Positions 33,561 through 44,304 of a stretch of DNA of 64,000 bases are shown here, piece after piece. This stretch comes from Blastocladiella emersonii ATCC 22665 (Eukaryota; Fungi; Blastocladiomycota), in the NCBI GenBank assembly GCA_025594325.1, contig JANHCV010000001.1, positions 5,022,001 to 5,086,000 on the forward strand, in the 5' to 3' direction. Both the position numbers and the translations under genes were made by a program. The notes beneath the pieces were generated by a model. That model was not told the DNA's origin. It saw only the letters and a program-made list of their open reading frames with translations, and did not search any database. Position 1 is the stretch's first letter. Every line of letters starts with the position of its first letter.

Positions 33561-34302
33561 TCAGTGCCCGCCGTGCTCCTCGCGGCACGCCTGCGTCTGG
33601 AAGATCATGGGCCCCGCGACCATGTTCATGGCGGCGGTCCCCGCGAGCGCCTCGACGATGGCAAGCGCAAAGTCAAACGTGGTCCCGGGCCCGCGGCTCG
33701 TGATGAGGCGGCCGCCGAGCGCCGACACGACGCGCAGCTCGGGCCCGCCCGTCTTGAACTCGAACGCAACCCCGTGGGGTGCGCCCGCCGCGGTGAGCTG
33801 CTCGGTCACCTCGCGCTGCACCGACGGGTGCGCCGTGACCGCCATGGGCGCCGACTTGTCGAGCGTCGCCGCGAGCTGCGGCAGCGCCTCGCCCATGGCG
33901 GGGCCGAGCGCGAGCGGCGCCGCGCACACCATGGCCACGTGCTTGCCGGCGGCCAGGTGCCGCGCGACGACGGCGTGGACCGCGGGCGAGGCCTGGAACG
34001 CGCGCGCGCCGTCGATGCCGCCGGGGAGCGCGACCACGTCAAACACCTGGTCCTTGACGCTGTCGAAGCTCGCGTCGGGCGTCAGCTTGATCCCGCGGCT
34101 GCACGTCACCACACCTACGCGCCGGCGTGTCAGCCATGGTCCTGCTCGTCGTCCCCGAGAGGGCGCACGCACCAGTGCCCGTCAGGCCCGCGACGACCAC
34201 GTCGATCTTGGCGCGGCGCAGAATGTCGATGGTGATGACCGCCTCCATCTCCTCGCTGCCCTCGGCGATCACCACGAGCGCGCGCTTTGCCTCGAGTGCC
34301 AT
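33561..34302 (-). CDS. DJ-1/PfpI family protein (PARK7-like)
   Basis: [30 protein letters not shown] (nucleophile Cys), ITSRGPGT; one intron. Confidence 0.9.
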
Positions 34303-34660: not shown

Positions 34661-36500
34661 ATGTCGACGCCCAACCTGCCGTCGGACGTGTGCGCGACCG
34701 ACTCAACAACCAAGCTGCGCGCGAAAGCCAAGAGCACATGGTCGCTGACCCGCTACGGGTCGAGCCTGCTGACGCGGCTACGTCGGCTCGCGTCGACCAC
34801 GGTCCCAGGCCTGGCCGGTGCAGCCGACGGCGGCGCGAACGGGCTCACCTTCGACGCGCTGCTGCTGCGCGACAAGATCGGTGACGTGACGCTGGCCGAG
34901 TTCGAGGCGCACCTGCGCGACAGGCACTGCGTCGAGCAGCTCGAGTTTATCATGGCGCTGCACGAGGCGTGGAAGCCGCTGCTCCTCGAGGACGGGGACG
35001 AGGAGGCTGAGCCGGATCCGCCGCCGCTGCACTTGCTCCCGCACGCCGTGGCCAGGGCGGGTGGTGGACGTGGCCGCGGGTCGTCCGAGGGCAACGATGC
35101 GCGGCCCTTTGCCGCCCCGCTCGTCGTGTCGACGGTCGGCAGCTCGCTCGGATCGCCCGACTACGACGCCTCCAGCCAGCCGCTCGTCGCGTCGCCGCAC
35201 CCGATGCCCGGCCGCGCATCGGCACCGCTCGCGAGGGCGCGCATGGTTCATTCAAGTACGTTAACCACCCGCTTGCAATCATACCAGACCTCTGACACGT
35301 TCGAGACGTGTAGTGGACCAACTCTCCTCGCGCCCACGGCAGCTCCACGAGCTGTCGTCGCACAGCCTGTTCGTCGCGACCGCGAAACGCACCAGCATGG
35401 GCGGTGGAGGCGGCAGTGCATCTCCGTCACCCACCCGCGGCGGCGGCGCGTTTGGCACGAGCCCATCGAGCGCCGCGAGCCGGGGCAGCCACGGGAGCGG
35501 GCCGCTCGCCGACAGCCCCGTAGCGGTGCCCGTCTCGCCGCCGAAACGCCCGTCGCTGAGCCCGCTGTCGCCAGACCGCGGCCGCCCCGGGTTCACGGGA
35601 GGCTCGCGGCCGGGATCTTGCCACGCGTCGTCGGCGTCGCTGATCGCGAGCCCAGACCCTGCGCCTGGGAGCGGGACGGGCACGCCGCCGGCCCACCAAA
35701 CGCACGGGTCTTCTGGCGACACATCCTCGCGCGACACGTCGTCGCGGTCGTCAAGCGCCGAGCGGGCCGGCACCCTCGCGCCGTTCCCATCCACCACCAC
35801 TGCCGCCGCCACCGGCACCGCGGCGGTGCACCAGTCGACGCTCCCGCACATCCCGCGCCGTCCACGCTCGCGCTCGCACGTCCCGTGGCGCTCGATCTCA
35901 TCCATCTGGCCGAGCATCGAGGACCGGCCGCGGTCCAAGTCGGAGATGGCGACCACCAACGGTCGCCGGCACCCGTCCTCGTCGTCTGACGTCGGGAGCA
36001 CGCTCCCGCTGTTCGCCGCGCTGTCACAAGCCTTCTCCGCAACGGCGTCGCGCGGGTCGCGCGGGTCGACGTCATCCCTCACCTCGCGGTCCTCGGACGG
36101 CTCGCTGACAGGCGGTGGGCGGATTCGGACCCCGTCGGCACGCACGGCAAGGGAACGCGTCTCGGGGGCGAGCGCGTCGAGCCTGCTGTACCTGCCGGAC
36201 CTCCCCGAGACGGAGCCGCGCGCGCGGCGGCGGGTGCGGACCGCGCAGCAGATCGCGGCCACGTTCATCGATCCGCGCGCGCCGAGGACGGTGGGCGTCA
36301 GGGAGAAGGTGGCCAAGGGCGTGCTGAGCGCGGTCAAGCGCGCGGCGGCGACGGGCGGGATCGCGGGCGACGTGTTCGACATGGCCGAGGCCGAGGTCAT
36401 GAGCACGCTGCGCGCTGTGTTCCAGTTATTCCTCGCGTCGCGACGACAACAAAGCTCTCCCTCCCCCCAAACCCCGACGAAGGTCCCACTTTTGCCTTAG
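34661..36500 (+). CDS. Regulator of G-protein signalling (RGS) domain protein with a split domain
   Basis: N-half TLAEFEAHLRDRHCVEQLEF; C-half AQQIAATFIDPRAPRTVGV...DVFDMAEAEVMSTL..VFQLFLAS; intron 35256-35313. Confidence 0.75.
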
Positions 36501-40277: not shown

Positions 40278-40751
40278 ATGCCGCAGATCCACAACGTGTG
40301 CTCGCACCTGCAGAACGCCTTCCGGGCGCGGCTCCGGGCCACGTCGCTGCCGCAGTCGCGGCTCAACGAGTCGCTGCTGACGCTGCTGCGCGACCAGGGC
40401 TTCGTGAGCGCCGTGATGCGCGGGAGCCCCGCGGGGCCGCACGTGCCCGCTCAGGGCGTCGCCCAGCGCCGCCTGTGGGTCAACCTCAAGTACACGGGCG
40501 CCGCCCTCGACACCCCCGTCATGTCCGCCATGCGCACCGTGTCCAAGCCGTCGCGCCGCGTCTTTGCGACTGCCGACGAGCTCGCCGAGGTCGCCGCCGG
40601 ACGCAAGTGCCCGCGCCTGCAGCACCTCGGCCTCAAGATGCCCCTCACCCCCGGCGAGGTCGTCGCCATCAACACGCCCAAGGGCGTCGTCGACCTGCAC
40701 ACCGCCGTGAAGATGAACCTCGGCGGCGAGGTGCTGTGCACCGCCAAGTAA
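40278..40751 (+). CDS. MRPS8: Mitochondrial ribosomal protein uS8m
   Basis: CSHLQNA, LRDQGFVSAV, VSKPSRRV, TPKGVVD..AVKMNLGGEVLC. Confidence 0.92.
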   Translation: MPQIHNVCSHLQNAFRARLRATSLPQSRLNESLLTLLRDQGFVSAVMRGSPAGPHVPAQGVAQRRLWVNLKYTGAALDTPVMSAMRTVSKPSRRVFATADELAEVAAGRKCPRLQHLGLKMPLTPGEVVAINTPKGVVDLHTAVKMNLGGEVLCTAK

Positions 40752-42268: not shown

Positions 42269-42593
42269 GGTTGATGGTTGGTTGAGAGAGCGTAAGCCGA
42301 TCGAGCAGGCCACGATGCATCAAGTCGCGATGGACTCCGTGTCTAAGCAGAGGGGGTGGCACCTTCCGGCAGTGTGATTTCGCAGCGACCGACCTTGCCG
42401 AGTGGCACCGCCGCATGTCGTCACACCACGGCCTCGAACAAAACACGCGCGAAAAACGCGAGACATAGGTGCGAGACACTTTTATTACACGCGTCGCTTG
42501 GTCGCGCCGACCTCCGCCAGCCCCAAGCACCGACTCTTCAACTCCAACTCCGGCCGAGTTATCACTTATAACTGCAACGCATCAACAACAACC

Positions 42594-43713
42594 ATGGCAG
42601 AGAAACTCAAGTCGGCCGTGGGCCTGAAGCCCGACTTCCGGTCGCACCGCATGGCCGCGCGCGACACGCGCATCAAGGAGGCCAAGACCTTTGCCGACCA
42701 GGGCAACCGCGAGCTCGCGCGCGAGCGGTCCACGATTGATCGCAAGGAGGCCAAGCTGGTTCGCATCACGACATCGCCCTTGCAACCCGAACTCATCCCT
42801 CCCTACCCGCGAGTGTAGCTCTCCGAGGTCAAGAAGCTCGTCCAGCGCGGCGACCTGCACGGCGCGCGGCAGCTCGCCAAACAGATCGCCATGTACCGGC
42901 GGATCGGCGCGCGCAGCTTCGAGGCCTCGGTCGCGATTGACGTCAAGCTGCAGGCCATGAGCTCCAACAACAAGATCAACAAGCGCCACATGGAGACGCT
43001 CAAGAGCATCCAGTACGTGAACGGCGGCTCGTCGCTCAAGGACGTGGCCAACCGCGAGTACAAGGCCATGCTCAAGATGGAGGAGTGTAACGCCATGGAG
43101 GCCATCAGTACGTTCCTGCGCCCGTTCGGTGTCGAGACAGCGCTGACGCGCTGCGCGGGATCGTGTAGTGAACGAGGGCATGGACGAAATCTACTCGCTC
43201 AACTGGGACGACGAGGACGGCGACACGGACGACGCGGCGCACCTCGTCGGCGCGCGCAGCGGCCGTGTCAGCGACATCGAGGTCGACTCGATCGTCTCGC
43301 AGGCGCTCGACTCGAGCCAGGCCCGTGAGTACTTTGAGCACGCCGCGCGGTCCGGGTCGGGCGCCGGGTCCGGCGGGAAACTCAACTCGGTCGTCTTCAT
43401 CAAGGTCCACGGCCAGCCGGGCCTCGGCACCAGCATCCCGATCGACTCGCTCGAGCTGTCCGTCGACATGGTCAAGCGCGCCCTGTCCAAGGACCCGTTC
43501 GCCGTGCACCAGCTCGGCCTCGCCCTCGATGGCGGGGCCGCCGCGACCAAGGGCGCCAAAGGCGCGCGGGCCGCGGTCGGGTGCTGCCGGCCCTTCGTGC
43601 TCGGGCGCGTCGACGCCGAGACGGGCGAGTTCGAGGCGCTACCCATCGACGCGTCGCTCAAGAGGTGCGGGGTGCGCGCCAAGGAGGTGCTGCACATCAA
43701 GACGCTCGACTAG
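42594..43713 (+). CDS. ESCRT-III (Vps2/CHMP2-like) core fused to a C-terminal ubiquitin-like domain, 332 aa
   Basis: Exons 42594-42758, 42819-43107, 43169-43713. RELARERSTIDRKEAKLLSEVKKLVQRGDLHGARQLAKQI and MNEGMDEI..EVDSIVSQALD align by eye with CHMP2; C-terminus VFIKV..SVDMVKRAL..LPIDASLKRCGVRAKEVLHIK. Confidence 0.8.
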
Positions 43714-43789
43714 ACGATGCGCACGACGCGGACAGACGAGGATTATGATAGCTAATAGATATATCTACACGGGTGAGGTTGGCGGGAGT

Positions 43790-44304
43790 CTAGTCCCACA
43801 GGTGCTTGCGCTGGATCTTCTGCAGCTTGCGGTGCATGTGCTTCGCTGCGCGAGCCTCGAGCTTGTCCGACACGATCTTTCCGCGCTCCTTGATCTTGCG
43901 CTTGGTGATCTTCTTCTTGACGCGCAGCGCCGACGACGGCTTGCCGCCCGCCTTGCCGCCGTCTTCGTCGTCCGAGTCCACCCAGTTGCTCTCGTCGTCG
44001 GCGCCACCGGCGGCCTTGAACTCGGGCGCGTCGTCCACGGCCATGCTGCCAGCGGGCTCGGCGTCAGCGGCGGCGGCAACCTTCTTGCCGCCCTTCGCCT
44101 TACCCTTGCCGCCCTTCTTGAACTTGGACGCGGCGCCGCCGGCACCCGCCTCCTTCTCGTGCTTGGCCTTCTCCCACGGGTTCACGGGCCGGTACACGAC
44201 TGACGCGCGGGATCAGTCATCAGCTGCCATCGCGGCGATGGCCGCCGCCGTCACGGCGAGACACAAAGGCACTCACTCTGCGACTTTTGTTTCGACTTGC
44301 CCAT
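43790..44304 (-). CDS. Small basic nucleolar-type protein, Ecm1/Alb1-like pre-60S factor
   Basis: MGKSKQKSQ|IVYRPVNPWEK across one intron; C-terminal KERGKIVSDKLEARAAK...KIQRKHLWD resembles the Ecm1 C-terminal motif. Confidence 0.5.

Follow-up and report, generated by a model that had tools for sequence, protein, structure and literature searches.

A CHMP2-type ESCRT-III subunit with a predicted C-terminal beta-grasp domain in Blastocladiella emersonii and other zoosporic fungi

Organization of the gene

The window analyzed here is a 64,000-nucleotide (nt) stretch of the genome of Blastocladiella emersonii ATCC 22665 (assembly GCA_025594325.1, contig JANHCV010000001.1, positions 5,022,001 to 5,086,000 of the forward strand); all coordinates below are those of the window unless another record is named. 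At 42594-43713, on the forward strand, it carries a three-exon gene whose product belongs to ESCRT-III (one of the endosomal sorting complexes required for transport). The product joins a diverged helical core of the Vps2/CHMP2 type to a C-terminal domain that is predicted to adopt the beta-grasp, or ubiquitin-like, fold. The start codon lies at 42594, the first donor GT at 42759, and the splice ends were read directly from the DNA. The spliced coding sequence comprises 999 nt and encodes 332 amino acids (aa) followed by a stop codon. The gene is built as follows, with helix positions taken from AlphaFold2 (AF2) models.

42594-42758, forward strand: exon 1, aa 1-55; alpha0, a short N-terminal helix, and the first half of ESCRT-III alpha1 (AF2 helices aa 2-8 and 18-65)
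42759-42818, forward strand: intron 1, 60 nt, GT..AG, closing with an in-frame TAG
42819-43107, forward strand: exon 2, aa 56-152 (last codon split); rest of alpha1, alpha2/3 and the greater part of alpha4
43108-43168, forward strand: intron 2, 61 nt, GT..AG
43169-43713, forward strand: exon 3, aa 152-332 and stop; a stop-free frame (open reading frame 43168-43713) that runs from the end of alpha4 through the acidic linker, alpha5 and the Gly/Ser linker and takes in the entire beta-grasp domain

Excision of intron 1 joins AKL to LSEVKK, a junction that is kept in the aligned full-length orthologues. A phmmer search with the exon-3 translation showed that the spliced product (P0001 in our set) is GenBank KAI9190477.1, a protein of 332 aa with 100% identity over the query, which was automatically named "Charged multivesicular body protein 2b" [Blastocladiella emersonii ATCC 22665]. 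The gene annotated on JANHCV010000001.1 covers the identical 1120 nt, and the window is base-identical to the GenBank record over the 21 kb that were fetched. The original prediction, made from the letters of the window, had proposed this three-exon, 332-aa model; the GT..AG splice ends and the match to KAI9190477.1 show that the model and its coordinates are correct, and all the peptide strings it quoted are found in the protein.

Predicted domains of the protein

The ESCRT-III core spans aa ~18-200. Searched on its own, the window protein matches the Pfam Snf7 family (PF03357) with 19.7 bits and E=7e-4, below the cut-off of 27.3 bits. Six of the ten family members scanned gave Snf7 matches, all weak, and one of the ten, the Catenaria orthologue at 37.1 bits, clears the Pfam cut-off. 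Exon 2 alone gave a marginal phmmer match to CHMP2A among PDB sequences (E=0.064), and Pfam searches with the three exon pieces and the isolated C-terminus returned nothing useful, these pieces being too short. A profile built from ten full-length family members matched human CHMP2A (7zcg_B) with E=4.8e-12 over profile positions 24-159. The same profile matched CHMP3 with E=7e-3 and CHMP1B with E=1.6e-2, so that CHMP2A is favoured over either of them by about nine orders of magnitude in E-value.

The AF2 model calculated on the family alignment contains helices at aa 18-65, 68-122, 128-160 and 187-198, in which the alpha1-alpha2 hairpin and the following alpha3-alpha5 are present. A Foldseek search of the PDB with the full-length model returned CHMP2A (7zcg_B) first, followed by CHMP1B and CHMP3, with probability 1.0; a Snf7/Vps2 match was what the original prediction had expected of this part. 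Its alignment of the helices with CHMP2 thus has strong backing at the level of the family profile and weak backing for the single protein. The charge is split, with an isoelectric point (pI) of 10.6 for aa 1-125 and of 4.2 for aa 126-215. The protein is a diverged ESCRT-III (Snf7) subunit that, by profile and predicted fold, lies nearest the Vps2/CHMP2 branch.

The second half of the protein is encoded by exon 3 and comprises the following features, with the predicted local distance difference test (pLDDT) of the model where it is informative.

43195-43272, forward strand: acidic disordered linker between alpha4 and alpha5 (aa 161-186); pLDDT <50 for aa 160-183, segment pI 4.05
43273-43335, forward strand: alpha5 (aa 187-198, with EVDSIVSQALD), then the conserved R-E-Y-F motif (aa 204-207); AF2, block pLDDT ~85
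43348-43377, forward strand: Gly/Ser linker RSGSGAGSGG (aa 212-221); pLDDT <50 for aa 210-223, length and sequence vary among orthologues
43387-43710, forward strand: predicted beta-grasp (ubiquitin-like fold) domain, aa 225-332, ending in ...HIKTLD; AF2 on alignment A2, and Foldseek
43534-43578, forward strand: disordered Ala/Gly/Lys-rich loop within the beta-grasp domain (aa 274-288); pLDDT <50, length varies among orthologues

The arginine of the R-E-Y-F motif, R204, is invariant in alignment A1. The C-terminal domain itself was modelled with AF2 on a 14-sequence alignment, which gave a pLDDT of 83.3 and a predicted template modelling score (pTM) of 0.72. The predicted order of elements is beta-beta-alpha-alpha-beta-beta-beta, with strands at positions 10-16, 19-28, 79-84, 91-93 and 110-115 of the domain alignment and helices at 35-44 and 46-51. 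Almost all of the 50 Foldseek matches listed from the PDB are ubiquitin-fold proteins, with probability ~1.0, E-values from 2e-3 to 3e-2 and identities of 9-19%. Among them are the ubiquitin-like (UBL) domains of USP4/11/15 (E from 2e-3), ubiquitin (TMt 0.74-0.79), the RAWUL domain of Ring1B and the EccD UBL, as well as the F1 lobes of the talin/FARP FERM domains, TmoB, SUMO-like proteins and PB1 domains. The UBLs of USP4, USP11 and USP15 and the Ring1B RAWUL are the best neighbours (E 2e-3 to 7e-3) and are, like the domain described here, non-conjugated beta-grasp modules, in their case devoted to interactions; they differ from it in showing 10-15% identity with no detectable sequence homology, and in belonging to unrelated host proteins.

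Sequence searches gave a different picture from the structural one. No ubiquitin or UBL family was matched in Pfam by the 14 family members searched at E<=10, the sole match being the unrelated AH_C (E=0.11), and no UBL was found at E<=10 among PDB sequences, either by phmmer or by profile. A match of the C-terminal profile to a nucleosidase (PDB sequences) was set aside as a chance hit of 18 residues with E=1.7. As a control, hhalign found the C-terminal and N-terminal profiles to be unrelated. The original prediction had aligned this region with ubiquitin by eye: the residue pairing has no sequence support in Pfam or the PDB at E<=10, but AF2 does place beta1, alpha1 and beta5 where that alignment put them, and the beta-grasp fold it expected from a Foldseek search is what the search returned. 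Several motifs are invariant in the domain (LSxDMxKR, DP..QL.L, PFxxG and F...SLK..G). The domain is mildly basic (pI 8.9) and adjoins the acidic region. A terminal Gly-Gly is absent from every family sequence checked (n=26); the window protein ends in ...HIKTLD, just as had been pointed out from the sequence. As judged from the predicted model, the C-terminal part is an integral, non-conjugatable beta-grasp domain.

One reading of this fold, put forward in the original prediction, is that the domain mimics ubiquitin and is recognized by ubiquitin or UBL receptors, so that the ubiquitin system would take the place of MIM-MIT contacts in recruiting or recycling the polymer. Candidate readers would be Cdc48/p97 adaptors, the proteasomal Rpn10/13, deubiquitinating enzymes (AMSH/Doa4), ESCRT-0/I/II modules and Bro1. 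Besides the fold and the presence of ubiquitin among the best structural matches listed, the DP..QL.L motif after alpha1 and the SLK..G motif before beta5 resemble ubiquitin, whose own pattern is here general background, and the exposed His68-like position of beta5 is mostly aromatic (H/Y/F/W), so that a binding site on the sheet face is possible. The evidence is mixed, and we regard the reading as unlikely. By sequence the domain is not significantly similar to ubiquitin or any known UBL family. Of the Leu8-Ile44-Val70 hydrophobic patch that such a mimic should keep, the Ile44-like position, assigned by strand register, is variable (V/A/S/K/R/Q/L/I) and often Lys or Arg, and the Leu8 loop carries insertions of ~100 residues in chytrids. 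The best structural neighbours are integral interaction UBLs (USP4/11/15, RAWUL) and not ubiquitin proper.

The position of the domain suggests another role, in cis or between subunits: it could be an autoinhibitory cap that replaces alpha6, or a cross-linker of subunits or filaments in the manner of RAWUL and PB1 domains. It occupies the site of the ESCRT-III autoinhibitory tail, alpha5 and the conserved REYF motif are kept just before it, RAWUL and PB1 are among its structural neighbours, and a basic domain stands beside an acidic region. Against this, the AF2 model does not pack the domain confidently against the core (pTM 0.39, linkers with pLDDT <50), and a flexible Gly/Ser linker of variable length suggests a tethered, independent module. 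We give such a role a low probability.

ESCRT-III subunits are usually defined by a helical core and short C-terminal MIT-interacting motifs (MIMs). Canonical Vps2/CHMP2 binds the MIT domain of Vps4 through a terminal MIM1 helix and is the main Vps4 recruiter. We searched the family for the MIM1 pattern (D/E)xxLxxRLxxL(K/R) in a strict and a loose version, using MIM definitions from PMC5840170. Neither version matched any of 26 family sequences, and AF2 predicts no helix after alpha5 outside the beta-grasp domain, which bears out the earlier statement that MIM1 is absent. A cryptic MIM1 in LSVDMLKRL was considered and rejected; this segment is the buried alpha1 of the beta-grasp domain (pLDDT >90) and fails motif positions 1, 11 and 12. 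We are highly confident of the architecture as such, namely a CHMP2-type core without MIM1, followed by a flexible linker and a predicted non-conjugatable beta-grasp domain of ~110 residues in its stead.

Distribution of the family and integrity of the fusion

We performed an exhaustive phmmer search with the exon-3 translation against 1.84 billion cluster representatives (E<=1e-3), which returned 18 matches; a word-based search with the N-terminal alignment added seven. About 25 homologues share the architecture of an ESCRT-III core with a beta-grasp domain, and all of those that are named come from Chytridiomycota or Blastocladiomycota. The Blastocladiomycota are represented by Blastocladiella emersonii, B. 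britannica, Paraphysoderma and Catenaria, and the Chytridiomycota by Phlyctochytrium, Chytridium, Zopfochytrium, Dinochytrium, Rhizoclosmatium, Cladochytrium, Quaeritorhiza, Thoreauomyces, Rhizophlyctis and two Synchytrium species. Proteins of Dikarya, Mucoromycota, animals and protists gave no matches at phmmer sensitivity with the exon-3 query, and it is at that sensitivity that we call the family restricted. No canonical CHMP2 was among the matches listed in the word-based search with the N-terminal alignment, and a word-based search with the C-terminal region of one chytrid member returned the query alone; with the full alignment as query, at least five proteins were listed.

In a maximum-likelihood tree the blastoclad and chytrid sequences are split with 97/94 support, and a Synchytrium group and a group of Spizellomycetales with Rhizophlyctidales are recovered with strong support. 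The split by phylum is consistent with vertical descent from a common ancestor of Chytridiomycota and Blastocladiomycota. Compared pairwise, the members are on average 48% identical over the core and 35-36% over the beta-grasp domain. Most of the relatives are annotated as "hypothetical protein". The C-terminal domain has no Pfam model, which leaves the family invisible to domain-based annotation, and our literature search turned up no account of an ESCRT-III subunit that has a ubiquitin-fold domain built in. The combination thus appears to be undescribed, as had been supposed at the outset.

Gene models in a genome of ~68% GC invite the objection that the fusion is an annotation artefact, in which neighbouring genes, or a gene and non-coding sequence, were wrongly merged. 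Automated models are unreliable at this base composition, and two related models are faulty. The deposited 257-aa model of the B. britannica protein (P0005, KAI9222136.1) is a truncated mis-call, and that of Cladochytrium replicatum (P0009, KAI8799781.1) is over-extended, with ~160 residues beyond the beta-grasp domain (aa ~306-471) that have no counterpart in other members and probably reflect a missed stop or intron. The objection is extremely improbable all the same. In B. emersonii one stop-free exon runs from the end of alpha4 through alpha5 and the Gly/Ser linker and includes the beta-grasp domain, the arrangement recurs in >20 species, and two public contigs, L001 (Logan ERR11260129) and L002 (Logan SRR31163102), encode both domains in single unbroken open reading frames of 317 and 328 aa. 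In B. britannica, tblastn recovered the three equivalent exon blocks in three frames, with the beta-grasp domain in the frame of exon 3, an exon that it shares with alpha5:

L003:2956-4061 (GCA_025349905.2 MU624680.1), strand not stated: full three-exon gene of B. britannica, by tblastn

As far as genomic sequence can tell, the fusion is genuine and not a product of gene modelling. Between B. britannica and B. emersonii, exon 3 is 43% identical as against 64% for exon 2, so that within this genus the tail is the faster-evolving part and the core the slower. The position of intron 2 is implied also in B. britannica and in the metagenome locus L005.

Some further observations concern individual family members. 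The L001 contig is very AT-rich, and L002 groups with Blastocladiomycota in the tree. Four short matches from metagenomes (P0002, P0011, P0016 and P0018) were considered as stand-alone forms of the C-terminal domain and rejected: their starts fall inside the ESCRT-III core or behind it, as partial gene calls would, and for P0016 the ESCRT-III exons are found directly upstream. P0002, P0011 and P0018, gene calls of prokaryotic style on environmental contigs from eukaryotes, start at or just before the alpha4 motif (N/T)E(G/S)(M/L)(D/E), near the start of exon 3, which hints that the position of intron 2 may be conserved throughout the family.

Possible roles of the family

In the Chytridiales-type orthologues (P0008, P0012, P0014, P0017, P0021 and P0024; alignment A4, columns ~310-325), the loop between beta1 and beta2 of the beta-grasp domain is extended by a long insertion rich in Ser and Pro. 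Within it the motif (F/L)P(S/D)(V/T)P is aligned among these members, one instance being FPSVPSIP. The consensus of the Vps4-binding motif MIM2 is phi-P-x-phi-P-x-x-P (PMC5840170). The chytrid motif resembles the core of MIM2 and could be either a relocated Vps4 handle or a chance motif of low complexity. The Blastocladiomycota members, the window protein included (domain at 43387-43710), have neither the loop insertion nor the Pro motif.

This resemblance bears on the reading in which the protein is the only Vps2 of its lineage and serves ordinary multivesicular-body sorting, with Vps4 engaged through Did2, Ist1, the MIM2 of Vps20/Snf7 or the MIM2-like loop itself. CHMP2A is by far the best match of the family, the GenBank name is CHMP2b, and the Chytridiales-type motif resembles the core of the consensus, phi-P-x-phi-P. 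From yeast to human, the housekeeping Vps2/CHMP2 is a well-conserved protein. By contrast, the core of the present family is strongly diverged, as its weak Snf7 scores attest, the Blastocladiomycota proteins lack both the insertion and its Pro motif, and the restricted distribution argues for an extra paralogue. We consider the sole-Vps2 reading quite improbable. Because the core is strongly diverged and the distribution narrow, an extra paralogue appears more likely than a sole Vps2.

We hold with moderate confidence that the protein is an accessory CHMP2-type subunit that co-polymerizes with ESCRT-III and either stabilizes the polymer or connects it with a partner that specifically recognizes the beta-grasp domain. 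As an accessory paralogue, it would be distinct from the housekeeping Vps2. Its core would let it enter membrane-associated ESCRT-III filaments. As polymerized subunits expose their C-terminal region, such a filament would present its beta-grasp domains as a recurring surface for docking. Engagement of Vps4 would be poor for want of MIM1, and the polymer would thereby be stabilized or handed to another partner that recognizes the beta-grasp domain. The outcome would be a specialized ESCRT-III assembly in zoosporic fungi, with zoospore cleavage, the flagellar base, the nuclear envelope and the endosome as candidate sites.

Several points weigh against this proposal. Entry into filaments, display of the domain and poor Vps4 engagement are all drawn from general knowledge of ESCRT-III. 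At 2e-3 or weaker, the E-values from Foldseek are modest, so that the fold call rests on the consistency of the matches and on a confident model, with no single strong match behind it. Finally, the chytrid members with the MIM2-like motif may still bind Vps4, which would blur the notion of Vps4 independence for the family as a whole.

The putative accessory subunit can be compared with several known systems. With Vps2/Did4-CHMP2A (PF03357), its best profile and structural match, it shares the alpha1-alpha5 helical core and the basic/acidic split; it differs in lacking MIM1, in carrying the beta-grasp domain in its place, in a core that falls below the Pfam gathering score, and in having named homologues limited to zoosporic fungi. 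Among eukaryotes, CHMP7 offers a precedent for an ESCRT-III subunit that bears an additional globular module for targeting. In CHMP7, however, this module lies at the N-terminus and is made up of ESCRT-II-like winged helices, and the protein belongs to the Snf7/CHMP4 branch. CHMP2B interacts more weakly with Vps4, forms stable polymers and is, in some lineages, a second CHMP2-type paralogue beside the housekeeping CHMP2A. The window protein may resemble it in being a second CHMP2-type paralogue. Unlike the window protein, CHMP2B has MIM1 (PMC5840170) and no globular C-terminal domain, and the GenBank label "CHMP2b" is misleading.

The closest architectural analogue is the crenarchaeal CdvB, which also joins an ESCRT-III core to a C-terminal globular adaptor; its core is of the Vps2/24/Did2 class and its C-terminal winged helix binds CdvA (PMC5840170). 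The two adaptors are non-homologous and belong to different phylogenetic domains, the CdvB module being a winged helix, and CdvB has kept a MIM2 for the Vps4 homologue CdvC. In a published parallel, which serves as a precedent for the proposal, a ubiquitin-fold moiety is placed on ESCRT-III subunits in vertebrates, where conjugation of the UBL protein ISG15 to CHMP2A, CHMP5 and CHMP6 weakens binding of Vps4 or LIP5 (PMC3362814). That attachment is post-translational, inducible and made by isopeptide bonds to lysines, whereas the domain of the window protein is genetically encoded, C-terminal and constitutive.

If the proposal is true, replacement of MIM1 by a folded ubiquitin-like domain would be a new wiring of ESCRT-III to its partners, and a natural experiment on a filament containing a subunit that Vps4 cannot grab in the usual way. 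In a bolder version, which we put forward tentatively as a possibility well short of even, zoosporic fungi have an ESCRT-III polymer of their own, which goes back to the common ancestor of chytrids and blastoclads and was not detected among the non-flagellated fungi covered by the search, and in which a CHMP2-type subunit swapped its Vps4 handle for a ubiquitin-fold adaptor and so couples membrane scission or scaffolding to a non-Vps4 partner in a zoospore-specific process. That process would be, for example, cleavage of the sporangium, events at the flagellar base or in ectosomes, or remodelling of the nuclear cap and nuclear envelope. The link to zoospores and flagella comes from the phyletic distribution only. 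The family would then be a candidate marker for membrane remodelling that is specific to zoospores in early-diverging fungi, among them Synchytrium endobioticum, a plant pathogen.

The surroundings of the gene are GC-rich (~65-72% between positions 36000 and 44300 of the window), and long stop-free reading frames overlap real genes there on both strands and in several frames, for instance at 43265-44203 (forward strand) and 42582-43181 (reverse strand). The length of a reading frame by itself is no evidence of coding in this region. Pfam searches with six adjoining long reading frames gave no matches. The annotated neighbours, which include unnamed proteins, point to no functional link with the ESCRT-III gene. 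They comprise a gene of the DJ-1/PfpI family at 33561-34302 (reverse strand), the gene for ribosomal protein uS8 (Pfam Ribosomal_S8) at 40278-40751 (forward strand) and, convergent with the 3' end of the gene described here, a gene for a small Lys-rich protein of 145 aa at 43790-44304 (reverse strand).

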